Assembly (NCBI GenBank): GCA_964247055.1
Contig: OZ176055.1
Location: forward strand, 4,774,001 to 4,838,000
Direction: 5' to 3'
DNA length: 64,000 bases
From: Paragordius varius
Lineage: Eukaryota; Animalia; Nematomorpha
The position numbers and the translations under genes were made by a program. Shown here in pieces: positions 15,022 through 63,800 of this stretch (within the stretch, counting starts at the first letter, position 1; each line of letters opens with the position of its first letter). The notes under the pieces are model-generated. The model searched no databases and had not been told where the DNA came from. It saw only the letters and a program-made list of their open reading frames with translations.

Positions 15022-17448
15022 CAGTGGTACTCACCAAAAAAATTTGACGGGCCAAATAAATATTTTTTTTTCGAGGGCCATGAACCTTATAATGGCAATT
15101 ATCCATAGCTATTTGACACATACGCACATATTTATACTCTAAATCAGCACAATGAATTTTTTGCGGGTCGCATGTAAATGCAGCTAAAAATTCGTTTTGC
15201 ACCATTTAGTTTTAAAAATTAAAATATATTGATAACAACATTTATTTTAATATTAACCAATAATTTTTGACAAATTTGGTTTCGCCTCATGGCAGGCCAT
15301 TCTTAATACGTCGTCCATATGATCATTAGTTAAGCGATATCTGTAAGTATTCTTGATATACTTCATTTTTGAATATGCCGTCTCACGCGTGTAAGTTGAT
15401 GGAAAAATAGTTAAGATAACTTGAGCACATTTTTTTATATTTTCATATTTATTTGGCACAACTTGCCAAAACTCTACATATCTTCTCTACGGTTTTCCTT
15501 AAATATAGCTTCCAAATTGGAATCATTTTTAAAATCAACGAATTCTTCAGTGATAACCGCCTGATCAAAACCGAAAAGCTCAAGTTGCTTAATGTTGGAT
15601 ATATCCATATGCCATGGATTTTCCACTAGTTTTAAGCAATTTTTTATATTTTTTAATTCTTTAAATATGAATTTTATCTCATTAGATAAAAATGTTAAAT
15701 GTTGTGTATTATTAAATTAATATCCGCGGTAAATTCCATATTTTCTTTATAAATCGTTTTAAGTGTAGGAAAATGTAGGAGTGTTTTATCTGTAAAATCT
15801 TGTTTATATATTATTAATTTTTCTTCAAAAGCAAATATATGATTAGCAAATTGGGTTTTTATTTTGCTCCCTTGGACTTGTATTAAAAGTACTAAGTTTA
15901 TAAGTAATGTCGCAAAGGTAGGCTAATAAAACCCACCATTTGTCACTATTAATTTCCTCGTCAAACTGTTATCTTTTATAAATAATAGAATTTCATGTCT
16001 TAAATCAAAAAATCTATTCAATACTTTGCTAAGGCCTAGCCATATCACAGCGGTGTACAAAAGAATATCATCAAACTCACTGTGGATATCTTTAAGAAGG
16101 TTTTTGAATTTACGGTGATTGAATTCTCTGCCACGGATGTAGTTAACTATATCCACCACCGTTTTAATTACTAAATTTAATGATTCATCTTTTACACGCG
16201 AAACCAAGTTTTGCTGATGAATAAAGCAGTGAAAGGATAATAGATTTTGCAAATTATATTTGTTTTAAAGAGGAATAAACCCTTTGTTTATTCCAATCAT
16301 AGAGGGACAGCCATCTGTGCAGATCGAAACCAATTTTTCATAGATATACCATTATTATCGAAAAAAGTGCTAATTACTTCAAGAAAATCACTGCCTTTTG
16401 TGGTATTATTCATTGGTAAAAATTTCAAATATTCCTCGTTGATTATGTTGTCGTTGCAAAATCTCACGAAGAGCGCACATTGAGATGTTGAACTTATATC
16501 AGTGCTAGAATCGATTGCAATACTGAAGTATTTGCAATTTTTCAGAGCCAATAATGTATTGTTAAAAATATATTTAGACATATCTTCAATGCGTCGAGCA
16601 CATGTTGAATCAGAAAGTTGAAGTTTTTTAATTTGCCTCATGATTTGATCTTTATTATGGAATTTATCAAATAAAAAAGTACCATTTATTAAACATTCTT
16701 TTATTAGTTGGGAATCAGTAAACGGTTTCATATTTTTTCCTAAAATATAGCAAATTTCATAGGAAGCTAATGTTACAGCTTTTTCCTTGGAAAAAGCTAT
16801 GGCCATAATAGATTTTTCTTTCTCGTATAATTCCTTAAAATTTTTATATTTTTCATTTCTTTCCTCAAGATTTTCTGGTAATTTATGAGAATGATGGATT
16901 TTAAAATGTCTTTCAATATTGTATTTTTTTATAATTATATCCTTGCATATAAGGCAGGTAGCAACACTGTTATTTAAAACGACAAAAAAATTATTTTCCC
17001 ATTCTTTTTTAAAGGAGCGATTTTCATCGGATAATTTACGTTTTTTGGCATTAGATGTCATCCTTTGAATTTATGTTTAAATATTATGTAAAAAAAATAG
17101 GAATATAAATTGAATTATGCTATAAAAAACAGGTCGAAATTTAATGATATTGAGTTGAAAATATTTTATGGGAATGAGTTTTAAAAATGATGCAGGATAG
17201 CAATGAAATGTATGTGCACTGGGTGAAAACAAAAAAGAAATGCAATAAAAATTTCAAAAAGAAAAGAAAAAAACAACGTGTGCCCATAAATCATAAATTT
17301 TAAAATCATTTTAAGGGAAATTTTTCTACATTTCAAATTGGGTAAAAAATAAATATTATTTAAAAAAAATTAAATATCAGTCATAGTGCATTTTTAAAGC
17401 ACACTTAGGGCCGCATGCGGCCCGCGGGCCGCGGTTTGAGTATCACTG
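15022..17448 (-). mobile_element. Full-length but decayed hAT DNA transposon (Buster / GTF2IRD2-SPIN-like)
   Basis: TIRs CAGTGGTACTCA / TGAGTATCACTG. Perfect 8-bp TSD gcctaaaa (15014-15021, 17449-17456) with the nnnTAnnn pattern typical of Buster hATs. Subterminal GCGGCCCGCGGGCCGC palindrome. Internal transposase remnants. Confidence 0.92.
15253..17061 (-). pseudogene. hAT transposase pseudogene
   Basis: ORF pieces 17061-16297 (KRK...F+.EW, BED finger CLIC...RHFKIHH, FSIAIDSSTDIS, LFVRF), 16252-15923 (HCFIHQQNL, W...KVL.RF) and 15459-15253 (FPSTYTRETAYSKMKYIKNTYRYRLTNDH). Several frameshifts and a stop separate them. Confidence 0.9.
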
Positions 17449-21680: not shown

Positions 21681-22528
21681 TTTACAATATTTTTCTTAAT
21701 AAAAAGAAAAAATGGCGGCGAAAAAAATTGGCAGAATTTTGTATAAAATTATCTTTTTTTCTATCATACGCCTAAAAAGCTAAAAAAGCATATTTATATA
21801 GGAGCCCTATACTATTTTTTAATTATGTAAATTATAATGGGACTGGAAAACCCAAGAGATGTGTTATTACAGATTACCTCTGGGGTAGTTTTATATCGCG
21901 CGATTTCTAATTTGATATCTTAAAGCTGTTTAATATATTAGTCTGAATTTAAGTACACTTTTTAGTATTTTATTCGTATTATATAATTTTTTAAAAAATG
22001 TAAAATTGTAAAAAAATTCTCATCTTACACTCTTTGCAGCTATTTTTTATTTTTTGAACCGCTAATGCAACAAGCAAATAATTGTATATTACGGTTAGAA
22101 AATGTAATAACTTTAAAAGGCTTCAAAATTCTTTTAACGAGTAAAAATTGGATATATTTTGATTTTAATATTAATGCTCGTTTCAATTGTGTTTCGGAGC
22201 TGCAATATTAGTCTCTATAAGTAATAAAAGTATATAAAATGTAAGCTTTTTATGAAAGACATGAGACTATTTGTTTAAGTGTTAACTATTATAACTTACA
22301 TATGATTTACAGCACATTCAAGCTCTGTGATAAAATTCGAATAATTAAACTAAGATAAAAAATGAAAAAGTAATGGCGTATAATATAAAAGCAAAGGCCA
22401 TATTAACGTTGGCAAATTCTATATTTTTAAATAATTTTTATTATAAATAAAAAGTAAAATTAACAATTTTTTCTATTGGTCATGGTTTTTATAAAAACAG
22501 TCAAAACACATTTTTTAGCTGAACTAAC

Positions 22529-25500
22529 ATGGAATTCAAAAACCCTACAACATTTAATCGGGATCAAATACTTTCGATGTACAATGATATATTTATGGGG
22601 TAAAATAAAATGTTTATTTAGAAATAAAATTAATACAACAAAAATACATTTTTTAGAGTTTTCACAAATTTTGGAAGAATATTTATGGCCAAATTATAGT
22701 CACATCACAGTATATATATATATATATTATATATAGACATCAAAAGAGTATATAATATTAATAGTTGCTATTACAAACGAAAAGATCAGGCAAAAAATTG
22801 CAGCCTTAAAAGTTTTTTTAAAAATAAAACCTAGGTATTTGAATGCGAATCACGTTTTGAATTATTTTTCCATGAATTCCTTAAACTTTTTTCAGAGGAT
22901 ATTAAATTTGCGGAACTTACACAATTGATATACTTTTTAAATTATGCATTCAACAGTCTGGTATATCTTAAATAATTTTAGGAAATACAATATGTTCGAA
23001 AGTACACACAGAAAATGGTGTCGTTAATTACCTGGAAATTTATTCGTGAGGTATGGTATCTGTTATTATTCCGCTACATATTTTATATCATAAAAAATAT
23101 GGTTTATTTTTATTATATGAAAAGCTCTTTTAGCTCTTCTTTATGACCCCCTTCCTATGTGCGTTTTTTTTAAAAATAGCATATACTTATTAGATCATGA
23201 TGACAGTTATGATCGTATAAAAATGAGAACATCTACTCTAAATTATAATTCTCTTTAAAATAATTTTTATATCTAGGATAGTATTAATTCTTATATATAT
23301 AATTTTATATTTTTTAAAAAGGGGTCATTATGCGGATAATGTCAAATGTCTTTTCACAATCGGGTTAATTTGTTTATATATTATTATTTTTCATCCTGTT
23401 GCCGCTATTTTTTTTAAAACCTGTCAATAAAATATATTTATGGTTTTTAACAACAAATTTACTTTTAATACACTCAATAATACAAGCAACTTTTAAATAT
23501 GGCACTATGATCAGTATCTTTAAATCAGAACTTTTAATTTATTCAAAATTTTAATTCGGGAGTTTTAAAACATAAAATGTACAAACTGCATTTTGAATCG
23601 TATCTAATTACATCAATTATAAAATTATGTTAATAGACAAAATTGTTTAACACTAGCTTTGATTGATAACACCTTATAAAATCTTTTTGTTGAGCATTAC
23701 AAAATAATAAGGGAAAACTACAAAATTATATTCGGTGATGCAACAAAGCAAAAATATAATATGACATGGTTCAAACCACTCTCAATGACAAATGGTTTTA
23801 ACTTATCATTTGTTAAGAGAAAAGAAACAACAATAAACGTTTTTAAAAATTGTATATAAAGAACCATTTTATCCATACTAATTTTTATATATTTTTTTGC
23901 GCTGAGGACGGACACACGTTAAAATGTCCGAAACCGTTCGCGAATTTTATTTATTCTATGATATGTTTTAAATAAATTTCTATATTTTTATACTATTCAC
24001 GTGTCGAAAATAATTTATATTCTTCAAAAATATAATAACCAAATATTGGGCTAGACACTTTCTAACCCGCATTAATTAACGAAATGAATATGGATTCGCT
24101 TTAATGTTGTTTATTTTTATAATTAAATATGTATATTTTATATTGTTTTATTAATAATGAATCACACAATCAGAATCGCCGAGAACAAGAATTTAGAAAA
24201 ATCCCTAAATTAAGGAAACTATACAATGCTTTCTTAAAAAAGGATGCTGCTGATACTCTTAACAAACCTCATGAAACAATTTACCAATCATTTTTGCGTA
24301 ATTTAATGGACAACTTTTTACACGTTGTTCTGCGAGGTTTATCAATATTTTGTTTGCTTATAATTTTATCACTCTCAAATATATTACACAATGTGCCAAA
24401 TTTTTCGATTTAACACTTGGATACAACACACTCATTAGGGGTAGTTGGATACCCCAGGCCTGTTAAAAATTAAATACTTTAAAAAGTATGGAAGGAATCG
24501 AAACCATGGCAAAATTTTGCACTTATATAACATTAATAAACCAAAATATTTAAAAAATTAATTCAAAAATACTTGATATTACTTATTTTAAGCTAAAACC
24601 GAAACGTAAAAATTTCGTCAACGTGACATGTATAAAATTGTAAAATTAAAAAATAATACAAAATAAACCGCTTTTTCTATTTATATCAATGTTAGATGTC
24701 ATTTATATAAAAAATTAGTTTTAGTTTTACGCTTAAAATTAAATGAAGACGATATTTTGCAAAAATTTTGTACAATAAAAATGGCGGCGAAGTAGAAACT
24801 TTTTTTTCAAAACAAAATTTTATCAAGATATTTTGGCATATTTATATAAATTTTATCAGGATAGAAGCATAAATTTAAATTGGGACCGTTTTCTTCAGTA
24901 GTTTAAGTTTTAAAGTTTTTGGAAAAAAAGGGTCACTTATTAGAATTTTATAATGGTTAAAAACAGATTCATAATTTATAAATTATTTTTAATAGAAACG
25001 TTTTTTTAAACCAAGTTGTTTTGTTTCCCTTAGATATCGATTCAAAAATTATTAAATGTATATCTGCGAACGACAAAAATTTGTGCAAGGAATTATCTGT
25101 GCCTATCAAATATGCTGAGCATTTTTTGGAATTGTTAATTGATTTAGAGGCTCATTTACCTAACAGAAGATTCTTCAATATTGTGTTGGATGATTTCCAT
25201 TTCATAACAAGTTGCGATTTGAGTCATTTGAATTATGCGTCGAAAGGAAAACATCATTTTAAAATTTCCACCATAATCACGAATGACTCAAATAAAGTAT
25301 TTAATGAATTACACTCGCGATGCAAGTTATTTGGTCAGGTATATATTTATTTCTACGGTATATAATGCTATTTCGAACATATTTAAATTTTTTTATATAT
25401 TTAGCTTTTGGATAATCTTAAATTTTATCATTCATTTGAGATCGATGATATATCAGGCGAACCTTACACAGAGGACGAAATGATTAATTATCATTATGAA

Positions 25501-44254: not shown

Positions 44255-47200
44255 GCTACAATCTCAATTTTTACAATCACGCACTCAATAATTAGCTTAT
44301 GCTGCATGCTCATTTCCGATCTAATATTATACGATGCAACCGTTTAAATGCGTTTACTATAACAAAACTAACCACTTGAACAAAAAATATTTTTTAAAGT
44401 GTTATGGTTGGGATCTTTCCCCATATTTATGAGTGGACTCTGATATTCCAATGATAATAATGATTTAGTCTATTATTTAATGTTATTTCTTTAATATTTC
44501 TTATTTTCAAGTCTTTATTGTTAGGCTTTTTGTTTCGCCAGGTTATCTATGATACCTAGTAAATATTACAGCATTTATATTATCTATTTAATTATTAGAA
44601 CACCAATGATAACGTAAATCGTCTTAAACGTTGCATTATGATTGGCGATCATAATCAATTGCCTCCAGTAATTAAAAATTTAGCCTTCAAGAATTACGCA
44701 AATATGGATCAATCTCTATTTACTCGATTGATTAGATTAGAGGTCCCATCTTATACTTTAGATGCGCAAGGACGTGCCAAACCTTCGTGAGTTTTTTTAT
44801 GCTTTACTTTATTCATATTTTGTAACGTATTTAATATTAAATAACGTCTTTGACACATTGGGCCATGCTTATAGTGCATCCGTTTTTAATTCAATTTTGA
44901 ATAAAAACGAGGGGTCCAAAGTCCGACTTCCACCTCCCCGTTATGCACCCTGGTTATTACTAACGGAAGCGGCATAGAGAAGAAATCATCTGTGTGATGT
45001 GTGGTGGAAAAAGAAAATCTTTTTTTCCTATAAAATACCACAATACCTGCATTCACACAGATGATAAAGCGGGTTGGCGCTATATCCAGTTGCTAGAAAA
45101 AACCAATTAGTAATATATGTAAGCCGAGATTGACTCCGTAAGCCCAGAAAGGCGATTCCATAGGTTAGGGACCCCGAAATAGTCTCTTAATTTACAAAAG
45201 CATGCAAATATTAAAAAAATCCCCTTAACTTAACCATATATGAAACTGAAATGAAACACTTACTAATAATGATAAAAAATTTTAAAATGATGATTTTGAG
45301 TTTAAAAATAATTATATTGATGATGGTTATAATAAATATGATAATTTCAATTTTTATAATAATATTAATTTACATGATAACAATATTAATGCTCTAAAAA
45401 ATCACAAACAAAAAACACCCAACAATATGATAAAACCACTGAAGATTGGCACTTGGAATATCTCGACACTAATCACTAGATCAAACAAAGAGAAAAACAT
45501 TGACATCTGTTGACAAGATATAAATCTGAAGGAAAGTAATTATTGACAACTATACAATATTCTACAAAGGTCAAATAAAACGCTAACATGGAGTGGTTAT
45601 AGCTATTGAAAATGAATATTGTGATAATCTAATAGAAATAAACAGACACAACGAAAGAAATCCAAATACGTAACGGCTTTAAAAAACTTTCCATCTATTC
45701 AGTCTGGATTAACGAAGCAACCAAACAATACTTTTGGAACCAACTATACAACATTTCTCATGCAATAACTCCAAATGACAAAATTTTCATGGGTGGAAAA
45801 TTCCCACGTTGGCACTAATGGTCAAGACTATATGAGAATACATGGAGGAAACGCTTTTGACAGCCGTAACAAAGTTTATAATTATTAGAATACAGCACAT
45901 CTTTTTGGCTTACTATCTGCAATACCCTCTTCACGAAACCAGCAAAAAAATTAATAACTTATACAAGTCATAATCAAAACTATGGTAGACTACATTTTAA
46001 TACCTATACAAGATAGAAAACATATCTAACTGATACACAACATAATATGATTGTAGAAAAAATAACAATAAACATTTCCTATTACCACAGTAACCAGAAA
46101 CCCAAAATAATTTTGAAAAGCTACACCTTCCTGATGTTAAACTAACTCTAACAAACTGTTAATGTAGCGCTTAGCTTCAACCACAAAACATCTGAACAAC
46201 CTTGGGAGAATCTTAAAAACATCATCATCCCAAATGTACAAAATTTTTGGGGCATAAAGAAAACATACAGGTAAAAGCAACAATTAAATTTGTGGTGATC
46301 AGAATCTCTAAAACCTTTAATCAAAATTATACGTCATGAATACAAAATACGGAAACAAACAAAAGATAAAAGAGACTTGGAATCATTTATTGAATTAAAT
46401 TACAACAAGCCATCAATAAAAAAACTAGAACAAGATATGAAAAATCTTATGGTACAATAAAATCAGTTAACAATAATAAAGACATTAAACAAATTATCTA
46501 TATTAAAGACAAACATCTAGCAACTGATTGGATAGACATAAGCAATGTCTAGACCACATATTACCAAGAACAATTCGGACAAATAAAGATTTTTGGACAA
46601 TAAACCAACCACCAGCAATTGGTCCTTGATCAATTGATAACAACAGACGATGTAAGAGATGCCATAGCCAAGATGAAAAATATCAAAGCAGCAGCCCATC
46701 TGAACTCAGCTCCGACATGATTTAAGCTTTCCCCAATGCATTCCACATTTAATTAATATATCTGATCTAATCTTGTCAGCGAATCGCATCCCTAAAGATT
46801 GGTCAAAAGTATCATAATACCTGTTAAAAAGGGAGACATGCTCAATCGTTCTTCCTACAGACCGCTCAAGTTATTGGAGCACCTGTTTAAATTTTTTGAG
46901 ACCATTAAATCAAAACTGAGATCAATCAGTAGCATACAGAAATCCCAATATGCTTATAAACCAAACAGTAGCACAATTGATGATATCTTCATTTTGAGAA
47001 GATTACGAGAAAATTATTTATTCAAAAATAAAAAACTTTAATAGGTTTTTATAGACTTACAAAGGGCTTTTGATTGTATCCCCAGGAAATTAATTATATC
47101 CACATACGATACAGCAATGTAGATGATTGGATAATCAAATCTATAGAAATGATGTACTACAAAACAACAAATTGCGTCAGATAAACGCTAGGCAACACAG

Positions 47201-50200
47201 CTTTTGTTCCAAACGAATCTGGTCTTCATCAAGACTCTCTCCTAAGCCCTTTACTTTTCATTTTAATAATGGATTACCTAACAAAAGATTAAAACAAGAC
47301 CCACCATGGGAACTTATCTATGCTGACGACATCGTCCTTACCGCAACATCAATGGAGGAATTAAATCAAAACTACAATATAAAATCACACCTAGAAAAGG
47401 GTGGAATGAAGAAAAACATAAGCAAAACAAACGTGCTGATAACGGGTAAAACTGTATATGAACAACCGTTTCCATGTGTAGTATGTAATTTAGATTTAAT
47501 CCTATGTACATCTTGCAACAAGTGGGTACACAAGAAATGTTCGGTTATAAAAGGGGCATTAATCAACAATTATAAATTGTATGTGAATCATGCAAAAATA
47601 AAACATCACTCACTACATCATTACTTTTATGTCAGACGCCCAAATGAGTGGTTAACAATTTTAAATACTTGGGCGATGTCATACATTGCCTAGGTAAAAT
47701 AAACCAGACAGTTTAGTATAGATCCCAACATGCTTAGTTAAAATACCATCAACTTAAAATATTGCTAAAAATAAACAATATCTACAAAAAACAAAGGCCT
47801 GATATACAAAGATGGCATACGTTCCACACTCCTTTAAAAGCGAGACATGGCTAATGACAGAATTAATAGAGGAAAAACTAATGAACATAGAAAAGCGGAT
47901 GCTAAATTTATTTGACCCCAATTTTTAAATAACAGTTAGTTTTAAAAGTTCTGCCTAAATTATATATGTAAAGCGTTTTTATTGAAATTTATAATTATAA
48001 TCTGGGATGTTTTTAAGTTCCCAAAAAGCTAATTAGGAAATAAATGTGGCTTTGAATCGTCCACACAAAGTTAAAATGATCATTGAATAAAAACGATTTT
48101 TTTTCTGTTTGCTAAGGCTAACCAATGATATTTTTCAATTTTATTCTATTGATATGAATACTTATTAATTATAAATACTAATTTCATATAGCCTATGCGC
48201 CTTATATGCGTGGAAATACCCACAACTTGGTAATTTGCCCCATACATTAAAGGATGCTGAATTTTTGACAGCCAATCCGGGTTTCATGTATGATTGTCAA
48301 TTAATCGATGTTCAAGACTTTAATAATGTGGGGGAGAGTGAACCATCATTACATTTTTTCCAGGTTTTGTTATCTATTTGATATATTATACTGTATATAA
48401 ATATTTTAACATTTATGTTTTCTTTAGAATTTAGCAGAAGCGGAATACGCTGTTGCATTGTTTACTTATATGCGCCTTTTGGGATATCCAGAAAATAAAA
48501 TTAGCATATTAACCACTTACAACGGGCAAAAACACCTAATAAGAGATATAATACAAAGACGATGTGGTGAGAATTCCATCATTGGAAAACCATTCAAAGT
48601 AAATTATATTATATATATCATATGTATGATGTTATAGGCTCCGTTAATAATTTTTGAACCAATTTAAATGTCCTAAAAAATTATTTCGGTCCATATTAAA
48701 CTATATTTTTAGTTATTGAAATAATAATTAATATTCATATTTTTTTAAAAAAACGAAAAATAAAAATGGCTGTTTTGAATGATATTAAAGCTATAACAAA
48801 GTGTTTTCAAGAAAACTCTCTTATGTTATCTTTTTAAGACATTCATTGCCATATACATCAAGTTTAAGCTATTTTCATCTATGAGTTTTAAATGTATTAA
48901 TTAAAAAAACCTGGCTTCGCGGGTTTGTCGCTTCCTATGTCCAATATTAACTATCGATGTAAAACATATTAGTATGTATTTTATAGAGTTTTTATTACTC
49001 TTTCGAATGATATATTGCAAATGGGCATTTAAAACATTTTTTAGTAAATTTTGATAAAGAAGGCGCATAATCATAAAAAATCAAAATAAAAATTCTAAAA
49101 TGGGATTATGATTTTTATTTCAGCTATACTGTTAAAATGATAGTAAATATTAGAAAATTTAAAAAAAACTCTAGTGGCAGAAAAATTTCTTGTCTAGTGT
49201 TATTAAGCGTTAATTTTTACTACATACACAAAATTATAATAATGCTAAAATAAAGTATACCATCTTTATTTCTTATTGCAAGCCAAAACAATTAATTATA
49301 TTTAGAAAATCACGGTTTAAAAAGTATGGTTGTCTTTTTAAAAATAATTGTCTCTAGTTTTTATGTTTTATCTGCTTAATTTCAATTTTTAATATAAGAA
49401 AGCTTGAGCGTACGCGTTGAGATATCAAGAGATTTATTAGGGTCTAATTATGGTTCAATCCGCCAAAATATATTTTTGGTATGGCGCTTTTATTACCTAT
49501 ATTAAAAGTAATAATCAAAATATAAATGAAACTTTTTTAATATATATTTTGTTAGATCTTAAATTGTTTATTGATTCTTAAAGCACATCTATTTTGTTTC
49601 TATATTTACATTGCTTTGCATATATATTTTATTATAAGGTGACTACAGTGGATAAATATCAAGGTCAGCAAAATGATTACATTATTTTGAGTTTGGTTCG
49701 TACAAAAAATGTTGGACATTTGAGAGATGTTAGACGGTTGATAGTTGCTATGTCACGAGCTCGGCTTGGTCTTTATATACTGGCGCGTGTCTCCTTATTT
49801 ACAAGATGCTTGGAACTTGGTCCCGTCTTTAATCAAGTATATTTTTAACATTTTACAAAGCATAAAGAATATGCATAAATCACAAATTAAAACATGTTGG
49901 AAATTTATTATTTTTTCCAATCTTTGTCCACTTACCTCCCTGAGATTTAAAACGATTTGTCGGCCTAAAACAGCCAACACCGTTTAAGACACGAAAAAAT
50001 ACCGTTTTTGTATAAAATAATTTGCACATCCTTAAAAATACATTAACTCTAAATTAAATAATTAATTACAACATTGTTGCAAATAATAATGATATTAGAC
50101 TTTAAATTAACCTTTTAGACTTTATGATTATAACAAAATATTTTTAATGTATTTATTTTAAAATAATATTTATATAAATATTATTATGATAATTGATTTT

Positions 50201-52028: not shown

Positions 52029-55000
52029 TTAATCCTCAATAAAGGAAACAGGGATGGACAACACCTTTTCAATTAGTTGATGTGCCTTTTCAAGACTAAG
52101 GCCATACCTATAAATAAATGAAAAAACGCAAAAATAAGATTAAAAAATGCCTATTAGTCTGATTGTAAAATTTTTATACGAAAAAAATTATTAATAATAA
52201 TGTATCGAATCGAAGTCACCTTTTTGCGTTTTGAGGATTTAAAGTTTAAAATAAAACGATGGATTATCAGAACAAAAAATGTATTTTAGACAAAATATCA
52301 ATGAGGAAAATTGCCTTCAGCTAGTAGCTTATTATTAGGAATTTGTTACTTTTTAGATGTAAACTGTTAAAATTTTTATTGAATATTTTCAAAAATTTAA
52401 AAGATCTACCCAATGTTGTCCAATTTATTTTTACAAAAAGCATTCTTAAAAGTTTGTTAAAAATAATTTTAAAACTATAGTATATATATATATGAGAAAA
52501 AAAAATTAAAATTAATTTTCCTCAAAATACCGAGTTATCTCACATCTTATCCAACTATAAAATGAAGTTATAAAAATTAAACGGCTAAAAAATCGACCTT
52601 TTAGCAAACAATCATTAAGGTTTAAGAAATTCAAGCAAGGGGTACTTTTCATATAATGCATACAAAATTTAATATCTATATTTTTTTATTAAAATTACCA
52701 ATATACAATCCAATTTTCGTCTAAGGATGGGGAACTGTTATAGATTTGATTTTTGATATTTTGGTTGCTCCAACTGCCTTCGCAATGTTTAAAATACCAA
52801 GGGTTTATTTTATTGTTCGAAGTAGAACGCCAAATGAGACATTTATATTTAGACCGAATTAAATTCCATAAAGTTTCACTAATTCCTTGGCCCTTATAAT
52901 TTAATAAATATATTATAAAAAATATTTGATAAATGTTATTAAGCGGAATTAGTCAAGTCGAGTGATACCAGAAACGGATTAGTTACTAGAGAATTACCGG
53001 TTTAATTCTTTAAGAATGAGAAACTCTGCCGAATTTTGCTCATCTATACAACTCCATATTGCTAATTCTCTTTTCATTAAAAAAGACAGCAAACTGATTA
53101 CCTACACATCAGGCTAACAATAATCAACAATCGATTATATATTAACAGGAGAAAACCTGAGGCATCTGATTCAAAATACAACTACTTATAATACGGATAC
53201 ACAACACAAATTACTTGTAAGTAAATTAAAATTGAAAAAATTCAAACCTACACCACAACCATTCCTACCCAAAATAAATACCTCCAAACTAAAACACACA
53301 GAAATAAATAATAATTTTGTTAGTAGTACAACAAACGAAATTAAAATGGATTTTCAATCAGTAGAGGAAGGATGGAATAAACTACAAACAAACGATAATG
53401 AATAATGCTGAAAAATGGTGTGGAAGGAAAAAGAAAAGCTCGTGACAACCCAAATGGTGGTGGAATGACAGCGTGAAACCCTTACTCCTGAGAAAAAACG
53501 AGCTACATAAAAAATGGAAGAAATCAAAAAATAATAAGGACCAAATCATATACAATCAATATAAAAACTGGTAAACAAAACTATTAAGGATTTAAAAAAT
53601 AAACGTAACTCGGAAATGGCGGACGAGCTGGAAAAGGACATAAATAATATGACAATATTTAGAAAAATCAAAAACTACAATCAAAACCAAAAGGATATTA
53701 AAAATATTTGTTGCGTTAAAGATGATGATCATAATCTTATCAAACCCAACGACATAATAAACAGATGGGAAAAATTTATGAAAACTAAATTTAACCCCCC
53801 TGAATCTAAGGTTACTCATGAAAATCCTGTCATACAAGGTCCCATTCAGGATTCACCCCAGAAGAAATAGCAATAGTAATGAAAAACATGAAATCTAACA
53901 AAGCCACTGGGCCCTCTGAGATCTCTGCAGATTTAATGAAGGCCACACCGATAACTGTTAAATTTTTGGTAGTTTAATTTGGTATAAAAAAAACAATACA
54001 ATACCAACCGAATGGGACAAAAGCAACATTTATCCCGTTTATAAAAATAAAGGAGATGCCCTTGATTGCTGCAATTATCGCCCACTAAAACTTTTGGAAC
54101 ACGGTATGAAAGTCTTTGAGACAGTGATGAAAAATAGAATTAAAATATAACAATAAATAAAAATCAATTTGCTTTTCAAGAAGGTAAAAGCATATCAGAA
54201 CCCATTTTTATTTTAAACCGCCTGCAAGAAAAATACCTAGCAAAAGGTCAAAAACTGTTCCACATCTTTATAGATATGGAAAGAACGTTTGACACTATAC
54301 CCAGACACCTCATAATTGAGACATTAAGGTACCAAAAAATCGAAGAATATATAATAAAATTAATAATGATCCTGTATGAAAATGCACAAAGCTGCGTTAA
54401 AACACCAGTCGGAAACAATTATTTTAATATCAATATAGGCCTCCATCAGGGCTCAACTCTAAGCCCACTACTGTTTATAATAATAATGATTATGTAAGCA
54501 GAGACTTTGCAGTTGTTCCACCATGGAACATGCTGTACGCCGATGATTTGGTTATAACAGCAAAAACAGCACATGAACTGAAAAGTTCATACCTTAAATG
54601 GCATACCTGCTTCCAAAAACATGGTCTAAAAATAAACATAGAAAAGACAAAGGTAATGATCACAGGAGATTTGAAAAAAACCATAAAATACCCCTGCTCT
54701 ATTTATTACAAAGGTTAAAACAAATTCCATTTTAGGTACATCTTGTAAAATGTGGGTCCATAAAAAATGCACTAACTTGAAAGGAAAATTAATTGACAAT
54801 AAAAATTTTAAATGCCAAAGCTGTATATCAGGGAAACCAAACATCCCTAAATCAAGGGAGTTTAGTATCGAAGATTGTAGGTTCGAAATTGTCAACGATT
54901 TCACCTATTTAGGTAATATCAGTAATAATAATGGGGATTCTAAAACAACCATATCAAATAGAATCAAACTCAGCTGGGAAAATTTCACCAACTCAAATAT

Positions 55001-58000
55001 GTATTAACACATAAAGACATAACCGTAAAAAATAAAATCAAAATGTATAAAGTGGGTGTCCGCCCTACCCTTACCTACGCCTGCGAACCTGGGCAATCAC
55101 AAAAACATTAGAATCGAGATTGAAAAGAACGAAAGACAAAATGCTAAAATATATGATGATAAATTCTACCATAAATGAACTAGAACCAATAACAGCTTTT
55201 ATCAGAACAAATAGACTTCGGTATTTTGGACACATAGACAGATCCAGTATAGACTCACCTGCAAAGAAAATTCTTGATTTACAGATTTCTGCCCCCAACC
55301 GAAAAGGGGGGCCTAAAACAACTTGGACTCAAATCATAGAACAAGACTTTAAATTCCTGAACATACCTCGAAACGCAACAAATGATAGAGACATATATCG
55401 TAAATTAATCCATCCCAATAACTGGGCCAAACCAATAATACCTAGTATGTGTGTTAACCCTTTGATCATAAAAAAATTATTAAAACCCATTTTATTTGTG
55501 CCAGTTGATGACATCAATAAAACAAATTTTAAGGTTCTCTTGACATTAAAAACCAATCATTTATAATTAAGAATAAATTAATATTAAGGCGTGCATCTAG
55601 ACAATGGATAAAATAAAAAATATAACAATTTTTATTAAATTTAATTACACTAGACAACAAATTTTGACCTTTTTTTTGACTGTCATTCTTTTAAATTTAA
55701 AATTTATTTAAAGTATATAAATAGTATATCCAAAAATATTGGTCTTACACTTTAGAATTTTTTTAGATTTTATTGAAAATTTTGGCCCCGATTTAACAGT
55801 AAACTTCGAATTTTCAAAATTAACAGTTATTGATATAGAGCCATGAATTATATATAATGGTTAAAATTTTTAACCCTTAAAGAAGTCAACTATTTCACAG
55901 ACAACTAATTTGAAAATCATATAAATAATTTTAATATAATTAGGGTTATAAGTATAAAATTAAAACAAAAATCTTTGAAAAAGCTTTTGGTTTGCTTTTT
56001 ATTAAAAATTATTATTTCAAAATTATACCTTGTGAATACTAAAATGCATAGTTATAACTGTTAATTCACATATTGGTTATAAAAGATTAAGAATATAACG
56101 TATATTTTTAATCTTTAGAATTTTGAAATTATCAGAAAATAAATTAATATTGATGAGATGGTATTTTTTTGAAACAAAAAAATTTATAAATGTCTGTTTT
56201 GTATGACATAAAAGCAATAAATAGTTTTAATCAAAAAAGTTTCTTGTGTTATCTTTTTTGGTTATTCAATGCCATCTGGACAAAGTGTGAGCTATTATCC
56301 ATTAGTTTTAAATACATATTAACAAGAAAAACGCTCTCGCAGCGCGTTTGACGATACCTATATCCAATATTAAATATCGATGTGAAACATATTAGTATGC
56401 ATTTTATAGAGTTTTCATTACTCTTTTGAATGATATATTACAAATGAGCATTTGATTTTCAAAGAATACATTTTTAAAATTTTGTTAAAGAGGGCTCATA
56501 ATCATAAAAAATCAAATTTTCAAAATTTTTAGGTGGAATTTAATTTTTATTTCGGATTTAGTGTTAATAGTAATTAGAAAATGCAAAAAACTTGAGAGGC
56601 AGAAAAATTTGTTGTCTAGTGTTATTGTGTGAAAATTATTTATCTGTATTTATATGTATGCTAAATTATATTTTTTATAAGTTTAGAAAATTGATGAACA
56701 AGTTGATGAATCGTCAAATAACACAAAATTGAGATCGAGAGAACGAGGAAGAGATCTAAAAAGAAGAGTAACAATGGATTTTCGACGCTGAGAATAGAAG
56801 CGGAATCGAAATTAACGGCCATGCCAATTAAATAAACTATGATTAATGAATCTAAAGAGTTTTCTTTGGCGAATCGAATATTATAGTGCAAACTAATTTT
56901 TAATAAAAAAATAATTTGGCATATCCTTTTTTATTGGTGAATTAGGTTTAATATACCTGAATATCAAATGCAACAGCAAATTTGTTTAAATATGGAACAT
57001 CCAATTGATCTTCTTTGGTAATTATTGCGGCTGCCATATAACTATTGTTAAAATTCTAGTACTTTTCGCTGACAATAATCTGATCCAACTTTTCATTCAA
57101 ATTAGTAAAATAGTCTGGTTTTAGCGATTTTCCAAACGCTCTGTGATATATAAATTATATCCAGGACTTAAGTATGAAAATATGGAGAAAAATTATATTT
57201 GTTTATATATATATATAGATATAAATATATATATCTTTTATCAACTACTAAACACTCAAACTTTTAATTAACGAACACTTTTTAATATAAATTTTCAATA
57301 AAAATATGCTTTTATTATAAAAAAACATGTGTATGTATTAAGTTATATAGTCCAATATTTTTAGTTTACCTACTCAAGTTATTTGTCACAATACTTCTTT
57401 TATTGTTGACTTATTGTTAATGTAGTATCTTATAGTAAAAAACAACTTCTATCTTTTAAAATATTTTATGAAATTAAGGATAAACATTTATAAAACAGGA
57501 GTGTCCAACACGCGGCTCGCGGGCAGCATGCATTCCATATATACCATTTGCACTTCAAGAGTGACCTGAACACTTCAAGTTGGTCCTGGAACACTTCAAG
57601 TCCTTAAACATTTCAAATTAGTCCATGAACACTTCAAGTTGGTCCTTAAAATTTTTAAATTTTGATTTATTTTTTAACTGAATTTTCTTTATTTATTATA
57701 TATTTATTCATTTAAAAATAAAAAATATTCTAACATTTTTTTGTTTCAAACTATTTTTATCCAATTTAACGAATTTATTAACTTTTAAATGTTTCCAATG
57801 AAAAATTGTAAATAATAACCCAGAAAACTTATATTTTTTATTACGTATTAAAATCTTATAATTATCCAAAATAATTTTAGGAAATTAATAAAAATATACG
57901 GTTTCGCAGATTAAAAGTTTCTATTGATTTAAAATTTATATTAAATAATAGAAAATAGGTTAAAACGATAAAATAGATGAATGATATACGATTTGATATA

Positions 58001-60860: not shown

Positions 60861-63800
60861 GTTTCATCGTATCGTCTTTGTGTAATGGCTAGCCATTGTA
60901 TCCGTATAGAAGCTGTCTGTAATATTTGCGATCCTGCCAGGCGTTATCATCAATGTTGGCAACACTTAAATCATTATTTATTGTTTTTTCCCAGTTGAAT
61001 GTTGGTCTGCCCCTGCGATTGTTACCTTCGGGATGTAGGGATAAAATTTTATTTGTCCATTGTTCTGGAGCACGTTTGATGTGTCCGAAATATCTAAGCC
61101 TATTTTTTCTGAGCATGACATTTAGAGGTTCAATTTGGTAGAGTTGATGTAAATTTGAATTTGACTTATTGGGTTGGAATAAATTTAGTATCCGTTTTTC
61201 TAAGTTCATTAGTTTTTTCTCGATTGAATCTGTCATCGGCCACGTTTCGCCATACAGGAGTATGGGACGTATGCCGGCTTTGTAAATCAAACCTTTGTTT
61301 TTTGCTGATATGTGTTTATTTTTGAGGACAAATTTAAGTTGATGATATTTTACCCAAGCCTGTTGGGATCTATATTTAACTGATTGGTTTATTCCACCTA
61401 GGCAATGTATGACATCGCCCAAGTATTTGAAATTATTCACCAATTCGATTTTGGTGTCTGCTATATAAAAGTAATTTAGGGAAGTGGATGAGTGATTTAT
61501 TGTTTTATTTTTACATGATACACATATAAATTTGTCATTGTTGATTAATTTCCGTATTATAAGCGAGCACTTTTTGTGTACCCACTTATTGCATGATGTA
61601 CATAGGATTGAATTGAGTTTAACATCTAAATCACATACTCCACATGGAAAAGGTCGTTCATATACAGTTTCACCCGTTATCATCACCTTTGTTTTGCTTA
61701 TATTTATATTCATTCCACCCTTTTCTAAGTGTGTTTCCATGTGTTGTACTTTTGATTTAATGCTTCCATTGATGTTGCGGTGAGGACAATGTCGTCCGCA
61801 TAGATAAGTTCCCATGGTGGGCTTTGTTTTATATCTTTTGTTAGGTATATCCATTATTAAAATGAAGAGTAGAGGGCTTAGGATAGAGCCTTGATGAAGA
61901 GATTCGTTTGGAACAAAAGCTGTGTTACCTAGTGTTAATCTGACGCAGTTTGTTGTTTTGTAGTACATCATTTCTATTGATTTAATTATCCAATCATCTA
62001 CATTATTGGCTCGTAGTGTGGATGTGATCAACTTCCTGGGGATACAATCAAAGGCCCTTTGTAAATCAATAAAAATATGATATAGTTTTTTATTTTTCGC
62101 TAAATAGTTCTCTTGCAATCTTCTCAAAATGAAGATTGCATCAATTGTGCTACTGTTTGGTTTATAGGCATATTGTGATTCCTGTATACTAACGATTGAT
62201 CTTAGTTTTGATTCAATAATGGATTCAAAAATTTTTAACGGGTGTTCCAACAACTTTAGTGGTCTGTAGGAGGAACAAACGAGTATGTCTCCTTTGTTTT
62301 TATAAATGGGTTTGATGGTGCTTTTTGACCAATCATTAGGGATGCGATTCGTTGATAAGATTAGATTGAATATGTTAGTTAAATGTATAATGCATTGTGG
62401 TAAAGCTTTGATCATGTCACAGCTGAGTTCAGATGGACCTGTAGCTTTGTTATTTTTCATCTTGGCCAAGGCATCTCTTACATCATGTTGTTATCAATGG
62501 TCGAGGACCGATTGCTGGTTGTTGGTTTATTGTTTCAAAATCATGTTTTTGTGCAAATTGTTCTTTGTAATACGTTGTCCAGACATTGCTTATGTCACTC
62601 CACTCATTTACTAGTTGTTGATCTTTATTTTTAATATAGGAAATTTGTTTAATGTCCTTTTTATTATTGTTAACTGAATTTATTGTTCGAAAAATCTTAA
62701 GAATTTTCATGTCTTGTTCTAATTTTTTAGCTAAATCCAAAGCTTTTTTGTTGGCTGAAATATTGATGGCTTGTTGTAAATTTTTATTTGATTTAATATA
62801 TGATTCCACGTCTCTTTTATCTTTTGTTTGTTTCCATCTTTTATAGTTATTGCGTTTAATTTTAATTAAAGGTTTTATGGATTCTGACCACCACAAATTT
62901 GATTGTTGTTTTTTCCTGTATATTTTCTTTCTGCCACAACAATTAAGCACATTTGGGATGATGCTGTTTTTAAAATTATCCCAAGCTTGTTCAGATGTTT
63001 TGTGGTTGAGGCTAAGCGATGCATTAACAGTTTCTGAGAGTTGAAGTTTAAGATCAGGAAGGTATAGTTTTTCTAAGTTTATTTTAGGTTTCTGGTTACT
63101 ATGGTAATAGGATTTGTTTATTATTATTATTGCTACAATTAATTTATGTTGTGTGTTAGTAAGGTATGTTTTAGAGTCTTTATTGAATTTTCTATCTTGT
63201 ATGGGTGTTAAAATTTAGTCTACCATAGAATTTTGATTACCACTTGTATAAATTATTAATTTCTTTGCTGGTTTCGTGAATAGGGTATTGCAGATAGTAA
63301 GTCTAAGAGATGCGCAGTATTCTAATAATGTATCACCTTCTTTGTTACGGCTGCCAAAAGCGTTTCCTCCATGTATTCTCATATAGTCTTCACCATTAGT
63401 GCCAAAGTGGGAATTAAAATCTCCACCTATAAAAATTTTGTCATTTGGAGGTATTGCATGGGAAATGTCGTATAGTTGGTTCCAAAAGGCTTGTTTGGTT
63501 GCTTCGCTTAATCCAGACTGGGGAGCATAGATGGAAAGTATGTTAAAAATTTGTTTTTTAAAGCCGATACGTATTTGGATAATTCTTTCGTTGTGTCTGT
63601 TTACTTCTATTATATTATCACAATATTCATTTTTAATAGCTATAGCCACTCCATGTTGGCCTTTCATTTGACCTTTGTAGAAAATTGTATAGTTGTCTAT
63701 ATTCAGCTTTCCCTCAGATTTATATCTTGTTTCCTGCAGGCAACAGATGTCAATGTTTTTCTCTTTTATTTGGTCGATAACTAAGTTTGATCTACCGACT

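Follow-up and report, generated by a model that had tools for sequence, protein, structure and literature searches.

Very short introns are found in several unicellular lineages: those of Paramecium are ~20-34 nt long, those of Stentor 15-16 nt and those of the chlorarachniophyte nucleomorph 18-21 nt, and the introns of microsporidia are also tiny. In animals, introns of less than ~30 bp were previously thought to be absent (Hadjez et al., Mol Biol Evol, September 2026; PMC13644364). In the 51 genomes covered by that paper, ultra-short introns occur only in myxobolid myxozoans, in which the median is 22-27 bp, and in Dicyema japonicum, for which two groups the paper cites Lu et al. 2019 and Zverkov et al. 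2019. These introns carry the signals 'GTa' and 'AG' with loose A residues before the AG, and their hosts have a canonical U2; introns of less than 30 nt are tied to compaction in two reduced parasitic lineages, and further lineages are predicted to have them (PMC13644364). Here we describe four putative introns of this size in the nematomorph Paragordius varius, at the 5' end of the gene of Aquarius (AQR), an intron-binding helicase of the spliceosome. The gene lies in a stretch of 64,000 nt (contig OZ176055.1, assembly GCA_964247055.1, positions 4,774,001 to 4,838,000), called the window here, and coordinates refer to the window unless another sequence is named. An earlier note on this stretch, made from its letters, proposed the four introns and listed the lineages with introns of comparable size; its list correctly included the dicyemids and is out of date, since the 2026 paper adds the myxobolid myxozoans (PMC13644364).

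The four segments, which are probably genuine GT-AG spliceosomal introns of 21-27 nt and whose splicing we infer from the DNA, are referred to as micro-introns 1 to 4. They separate the first five exons of AQR, a + strand gene that opens at ATG 22529, with an in-frame TGA three codons before this start:

22529-22599, + strand: AQR exon 1, 71 nt, an ATG, 23 codons and two bases of a split Gly codon
22600-22621, + strand: micro-intron 1 (putative), 22 nt, GTAAAA...TTTAG, phase 2, frame shift
22622-22709, + strand: AQR exon 2, 88 nt, Pfam Aquarius_N_1st
22710-22736, + strand: micro-intron 2 (putative), 27 nt, GTATAT...TATAG, phase 0, (TA)n-like, terminal in-frame TAG
22737-22811, + strand: AQR exon 3, 75 nt, Pfam Aquarius_N_1st
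22812-22834, + strand: micro-intron 3 (putative), 23 nt, GTTTTT...CCTAG, phase 0, frame shift
22835-22960, + strand: AQR exon 4, 126 nt, Pfam Aquarius_N_1st
22961-22981, + strand: micro-intron 4 (putative), 21 nt, GTATAT...TTTAG, phase 0, in-frame TAA
22982-23050, + strand: AQR exon 5, 69 nt, 23 codons

Direct reading and a script return the same coordinates, intron lengths (22, 27, 23 and 21 nt) and exon sizes as had been claimed for the locus. All four segments start with GT and end with TAG, and three of the four start with GTA. Besides the GT and the AG they contain 1, 0, 2 and 1 G or C letters, respectively, which bears out their description as GT-AG introns of nearly pure A/T. Their G+C content is 0.07-0.17, against 0.22-0.33 in the exons, and the window as a whole is AT-rich (G+C 0.24-0.33 per 2-kb bin). 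With lengths of 21-27 nt and the motifs GT(A) and (T)AG, they fall in the ultra-short class, which comprises introns of at most 30 nt with reduced motifs. When the four segments are excised, the exons join into 429 nt, or 143 codons, with no stop, whereas the longest open stretch of the unspliced sequence has 68 codons. Micro-intron 2 consists essentially of a (TA)n microsatellite, with low-complexity sequence extending over 22701-22741; length variation between individuals, if present, would be tolerable in an intron and not in a coding sequence.

The gene is, judged by its sequence, a functional single-copy AQR. Pfam matches follow one another colinearly along the + strand from 22623 to 49845 in the order Aquarius_N_1st, Aquarius_N_2nd, Aquarius_N_3rd, AAA_11 and AAA_12, so that the three Aquarius domains are followed by the SF1 helicase core, as in AQR orthologues. 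The match to Aquarius_N_1st covers positions 38-387 of the model and the match to Aquarius_N_2nd positions 6-171. A search of solved structures gives human and C. elegans AQR as the closest matches, and the exon pair at 26713-27168 corresponds to residues 389-479 of human AQR (E 9e-35), which is the top match in the PDB. The domain order is equal to that of human AQR/IBP160 and C. elegans EMB-4 (PDB 4PJ3, 5MQF and 8RO0) and the sequences are close, with conserved exons of the middle region ~80% identical to human AQR. Helicase motifs are readable in the open frames and the gene is intact through AAA_12. AQR is present in a single copy in the 110.56-Mb genome of 44 contigs, in which no processed copy (retrocopy) was found elsewhere. 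The domain order and the structure matches thus confirm that the gene had been correctly called the spliceosomal helicase AQR.

Evidence that the segments are removed comes mainly from the colinearity of the flanking exons with AQR proteins. Exons were searched singly, and the joined translation was used in the script solely to check for stops. Exon 2 matches Aquarius_N_1st positions 38-62 (E 5.7e-7), residues 58-80 of C. elegans EMB-4 (E 1.2e-4) and residues 62-82 of human AQR. Exon 3 matches positions 66-87 of the same model; its E-value across the whole of Pfam is 0.07, but family and location are those expected. Residues 5-42 of exon 4 match positions 95-133 (E 0.028), a match that extends to the exon's final residue. 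The last two E-values refer to a search across 24,736 families; because both matches are to the single family that was expected and at the coordinates expected for it, they would be far less likely to arise by chance than these values imply. At the joint of exons 2 and 3 the profile is left at about position 65 and resumed at 65-66, and at the joint of exons 3 and 4 it is left at about 89 and resumed at about 91, so exons 2-4, which lie in different reading frames, lack at most ~2 profile positions per joint. The 23 residues of exon 5 fit the gap between profile position 133, where exon 4 ends, and position ~157, where the next exon begins (24174).

Codon usage was scored with a model trained on 1,165 downstream AQR codons, whose leave-one-out mean per codon is +0.30 bits for the true frame and -0.29 for off frames. 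The predicted frame of exon 1 scores +6.3 bits, against -3.4 for the frame that would read through micro-intron 1 and -6.5 for the other, and that of exon 5 scores +3.9 bits, against -3.2 and -0.6. The predicted frame is also preferred in exons 2 and 4. Exon 3 does not separate the frames, with -0.8 bits in the predicted frame and +2.0 in one of the others, and the four micro-introns are negative in every frame. For introns 1 and 4 the evidence of colinearity consists of spacing and codon usage. The claim that removal of the four segments restores colinearity with AQR thus stands for exons 2-4, which lie on the Pfam profile, and is not borne out in the same way for exons 1 and 5, which have no match of their own.

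A further micro-intron is predicted in the gene of SRP54, which begins in the DNA 20-29 kb past the window, ~25 kb downstream. Its first exon (L005:4721-4798) corresponds to residues 1-26 of human SRP54 (E 1e-7) and, in the second (L005:4820-5017), residues 2-60 correspond to human residues 28-86 (E 2.5e-19). The first intron between them (L005:4799-4819, that is G000 C6:4862799-4862819, + strand) has 21 nt, reads GTATAT...ATTAG and contains an in-frame TAA. Because the flanking exons match human residues 1-26 and 28-86, removal of the 21 nt joins residues 26 and 27 exactly. This predicted intron is a cleaner example than any of those in AQR and shows that the class occurs in a highly conserved gene.

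The segments were also compared with an independent DNA run, X5, which consists of Logan contigs from a different study under a different organism label, at ~5x depth. One contig covers 22562-22700, which includes micro-intron 1, with no differences. Another covers 22742-23171 with two differences, neither of which is within micro-introns 3 and 4; one of the two, T>C at 22873, falls on a third codon position of exon 4 and is synonymous. Contig ends flank the (TA)n of micro-intron 2 (22701-22741), which is not re-read there. The first 250 nt of the long intron that follows have four substitutions and one insertion, more than the block of exons and micro-introns. No joint excising any micro-intron is found in the X5 contigs. 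Because this independent run contains micro-introns 1, 3 and 4 unchanged, these three are not assembly errors, and the possibility that they could prove to be sequencing artefacts, which the earlier note had raised against its own proposal, is answered for them.

Taken separately, micro-introns 2, 3 and 4 are each very probably real and micro-intron 1 is probably so, and that all four are real is likely, at a level slightly below that of the first intron. Some results weigh against this. Neither exon 1 nor exon 5 is matched on its own in Pfam or the PDB. None of the listed runs with this DNA is on record as RNA, and three putative RNA runs that carry the species label of the best DNA runs yielded, over 22300-28299, nothing but short spurious matches of low complexity. 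Open-frame chaining, in addition, fails to separate GT..AG from control dinucleotides, both in ~280 kb of this genome and in the AQR region itself. At first view the open path of 429 nt, obtained with at most four GT..AG removals of 18-30 nt, is exceptional, as not one of 200 dinucleotide-shuffled sequences reached it (mean 179, maximum 365). When dinucleotide pairs are compared in the AQR region, however, GT..AG gives an open path of 450 against 437 for CA..GA, and pairs made of A and T only are equally good; among all 256 pairs GT-AG ranks 21, and it is narrowly first among the 144 pairs of rarer dinucleotides. A homology-free scan for micro-introns in the window and ~217 kb more (~280 kb in total), which tested flanking open frames and then chains of at least two introns, found no excess of GT..AG over the control pairs and no GT..AG length peak. 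Open-frame chaining alone is no evidence in DNA this AT-rich, and since the open-frame statistic alone is weak, the claim that the arrangement is more than chance rests on protein colinearity. The putative RNA runs, X9-X11, have 19-30 million letters and contain nothing of the 6-kb AQR stretch even at 88% likeness; their depth may be very low, or the label may cover a second species.

Among the other explanations, the one that survives best, which is still quite unlikely, is that there are only three introns and that segment 1 is coding or 5' sequence, with a start at ATG 22482 or ATG 22584. The frame of exon 2 is in fact open from 22476 through segment 1 and contains both ATGs, which is a point against micro-intron 1 to be added to those above, and exon 1 has no homology match. 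The residues gained by reading through do not improve the Pfam match (29.2 against 29.3 bits) and reduce the PDB match (22.1 against 24.6 bits), while in codon usage the spliced frame is ahead by ~10 bits over the bases of exon 1 and segment 1 itself scores -3.6. Segment 1 also has the GT...TAG ends and the low G+C of the other three. The earlier claim that every one of the four removals is required thus holds in that segments 1 and 3 shift the frame and segments 2 and 4 carry in-frame stops, and is too strong for intron 1, which is not strictly forced because an open frame from 22482 or 22584 reads into exon 2.

A different splice pattern is very improbable, the most evident one being an in-frame intron of 84 nt (22812-22895) that would replace the 23-nt intron 3 or alternate with it. 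The frame is indeed kept by its GT at 22812 and its strong acceptor TTTTTTCAG, rich in pyrimidines and with a CAG that ends at 22895, and this too counts against the 23-nt intron. The 84-nt version, however, skips the first 20 codons of exon 4 and deletes about positions 91-111 of a conserved domain, whereas the alignment of exon 4 to the profile (residues 5-42, positions 95-133) is free of gaps and the codon usage of the whole exon is positive in frame.

It is less probable still that the 5' end is decayed, which would place the apparent mutations in an untranslated region and start the working protein downstream. The N-terminal part is weakly conserved, as exons 1, 3, 4 and 5 have weak matches or none; against this, each of the four breaks has GT and AG precisely at its borders, all are of one size class, the intervening exons are colinear with the profile, and human AQR retains the region. 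The gene, moreover, is single copy and otherwise intact, and the sole variant found in these exons is synonymous.

Removal by a route other than splicing, either by somatic DNA excision as in the internal eliminated sequences of ciliates or by translational bypassing, is scarcely credible. The segments do have a size like that of the shortest ciliate eliminated sequences and of the mitochondrial 'byp' elements, but their ends are GT..AG and not TA..TA, the DNA of X5 keeps them and shows no joint that lacks them, canonical U1 and U2 are present in the genome, and introns as short as these that have been published from animals are spliceosomal (PMC13644364). It is hardly conceivable that the segments arose in sequencing or assembly: nothing was found in favour of it, X5 reproduces 22562-22700 and 22742-23171, which include micro-introns 1, 3 and 4, and GT-AG insertions of 21-27 nt are no known type of error. 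The interpretation of the four segments as introns, which the earlier note had advanced, is thus supported by their canonical ends, by the need of the frame and by the colinearity of exons 2-4, with indirect support for micro-intron 1.

The micro-introns would be removed by the ordinary major (U2-type) spliceosome, which would recognise each of them as a unit with very reduced signals, namely GT(A) as the donor and (T)AG as the acceptor. The genome contains a U1 small nuclear RNA (snRNA) of 124 bits with the canonical sequence for pairing with the 5' splice site, ACUUACCUG, and a U2 snRNA of 178 bits with the canonical GUAGUA branch-site pairing region, GUGUAGUAUCUGUUCUUAUCAG. The earlier note's statement that introns this short cannot accommodate conventional binding of U1 and U2 at the same time is an inference. 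None of the four micro-introns has a U12-type 5' end (RTATCCTT) or a branch site like TCCTTAAC. U2-type splicing is the likeliest mechanism because U1 and U2 are canonical and U12-type 5' ends are absent from the four introns. In each micro-intron, A residues precede the AG by 5-13 nt, and the branch point would be one of these interior A residues, with its exact position putative. The five introns (four of AQR and the one of SRP54) share no branch-point motif, and a T(T/A)TAAT motif is found in none of them, which agrees with the earlier claim that the AQR micro-introns lack a recognisable branch-point consensus.

Many copies of U1 are located at G000 C6:565000-634000 and copies of U2 at C3:257000-528000, with a broad range of scores, and both clusters are apparently arrays that include decayed copies. 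A gene of U6atac is present at G000 C2:4857045-4857187 (L034), with 66 bits against a cut-off of 33. With U6atac present, the animal may possess a minor spliceosome; of the 42 candidates scored for U12 none proved to be one, which is no proof of its absence.

After its fifth exon the gene changes in character, and its introns are of ordinary size:

23051-24173, + strand: first ordinary AQR intron, ~1123 nt, GTATGG...ATCAG; the next exon matches Aquarius_N_1st positions 155-210
24174-49845, + strand: rest of AQR, at least 21 further exons, with introns from 62 nt to ~3.9 kb
25339-25404: short ordinary AQR intron, 66 nt
25520-25581: short ordinary AQR intron, 62 nt
26855-26959: short ordinary AQR intron, 105 nt
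34064-34166: short ordinary AQR intron, 103 nt
48364-48427: short ordinary AQR intron, 64 nt

In order along the gene, the introns have 22, 27, 23, 21, ~1123, ~750, 66, 62, ~880, 105, ~860 and ~100-120 nt, then ~1.4 kb, ~3.9 kb, 103 nt, ~3.4 kb, ~0.6 kb, ~2.4 kb and ~1.2 kb, and finally ~100-190 nt, ~0.67 kb, ~0.68 kb, ~3.4 kb, 64 nt and ~1 kb. No AQR intron has 28-61 nt. The tiny class is discrete and 5'-terminal because every later intron of the gene has at least 62 nt, and the tiny introns are the first four of ~25, a placement with a chance probability of ~1 in 12,000. With four of ~25 introns they are not the dominant size and do not set the median. The intron arrangement of AQR is therefore two-class and 5'-polar, and not that of a compact gene. 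The host would have an AT-rich genome with two classes of introns, one of micro-introns of ~20-30 nt and one of ordinary introns from ~60 nt to several kb.

Compared with the introns of the myxobolids (Henneguya, Thelohanellus and Myxobolus) and of Dicyema japonicum, those described here are alike in being animal nuclear GT-AG introns of ~20-30 nt with reduced signals. They also share with them the lack of a polypyrimidine tract, the loose A residues before the AG, a canonical U2 and the tendency of short introns to adjoin short introns. The systems differ in that tiny introns are the median of the whole intron population in myxobolids and Dicyema, whereas in the AQR of the window they are only four of ~25 and the first four. 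Myxozoan genomes are, in addition, compact and fast-evolving, while this AQR is well conserved and has multi-kb introns with retrotransposons. With the tiny introns of ciliates, nucleomorphs and microsporidia the micro-introns share U2-type removal below the classic minimum and the tendency of introns with a length of 3n to contain in-frame stops. Those lineages, however, are unicellular, with a uniform small class in dense genomes, and have no two-class system within one gene. The second class of AQR introns (62, 64, 66, 103 and 105 nt) resembles the ordinary minimal introns of animals, of ~50-90 nt; the four micro-introns have less than half the length of an ordinary minimal intron, with an empty size range between the two classes. 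The paper on the Gordionus genome does not mention introns.

New with respect to the papers searched are the presence of two size classes in one gene, the 5' polarity and the genome, which is not compact; the size class itself is already published. The setting is a conserved housekeeping gene in a repeat-rich genome of 110 Mb, with the tiny introns at the 5' end only and multi-kb introns adjoining them. If RNA confirms these introns, intron shortening could be local and polar rather than genome-wide. A more far-reaching proposal, which is unlikely, is that each AQR transcript is subject to two splicing regimes and that this is a third independent origin of animal introns of less than 30 nt, in a genome that is not compact. 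If true, cap-proximal introns of ~20-30 nt would be recognised whole and almost without signals, the long introns filled with retrotransposons would be handled conventionally, and the non-compact genome would speak against an origin by genome streamlining.

Hirose and colleagues are said to have found in 2006 that AQR contacts the intron ~33-40 nt upstream of the branch point; because the micro-introns have only 21-27 nt, this contact point would fall in the upstream exon. It can be speculated that AQR works differently on micro-introns, or that micro-introns need no such contact. During catalytic activation AQR is reported to act on the part of the intron that precedes the branch site (PMC10208982), and if the proposal of two regimes is true, the first four introns of the AQR pre-mRNA would be removed without the usual grip of AQR on the intron. 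The micro-introns are a natural test of how much intron is required by the spliceosome, and by AQR especially. On the practical side, gene finders and BUSCO-type tools that assume a minimum intron of 30-40 nt would fragment or overlook genes of this kind, and some of the 'gene losses' reported in this group may need to be re-checked.

Other observations concern the remainder of the AQR gene and its surroundings. An acceptor-like sequence, TTTTTTAG, is found at 22511-22518, 11 nt 5' of the AQR start codon, and could be the 3' end of an intron in the 5' untranslated region or a trans-splice acceptor. The in-frame 105-nt intron at 26855-26959 separates a Gly and a Cys codon, which correspond to residues 430 and 431 of the 4PJ3 chain. 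Open reading frame (ORF) fragments of vertebrate genomes (P0001, P0002 and P0013) read through an intron at this same position, which is thus ancient, being common to them and to the window. A word search for AQR of relatives with 26713-27168 gave, under its length filter, distant fragments only, and one with 25021-25365 gave no match.

Several of the long AQR introns contain ORFs of RTE-type retrotransposons. RTE-like ORFs with endonuclease and reverse transcriptase are found at 32555-33191 (- strand), 45215-47693 (+ strand), 54626-55566 and 60889-63844 (- strand); some lie within AQR introns, where at least one has the orientation of the gene, and others beyond its 3' end. The sequence at 24300-24900, in AQR intron 6, is a very high-copy short element with many internal joints in X5, where its depth is ~1000x that of unique DNA, with word depths up to ~31,000 against ~5. 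Upstream of the gene, at 15923-17061 (- strand), a pair of neighbouring ORFs (254 and 109 aa) resembles a remnant of a zinc-finger/hAT-type transposase, for which it is a candidate.

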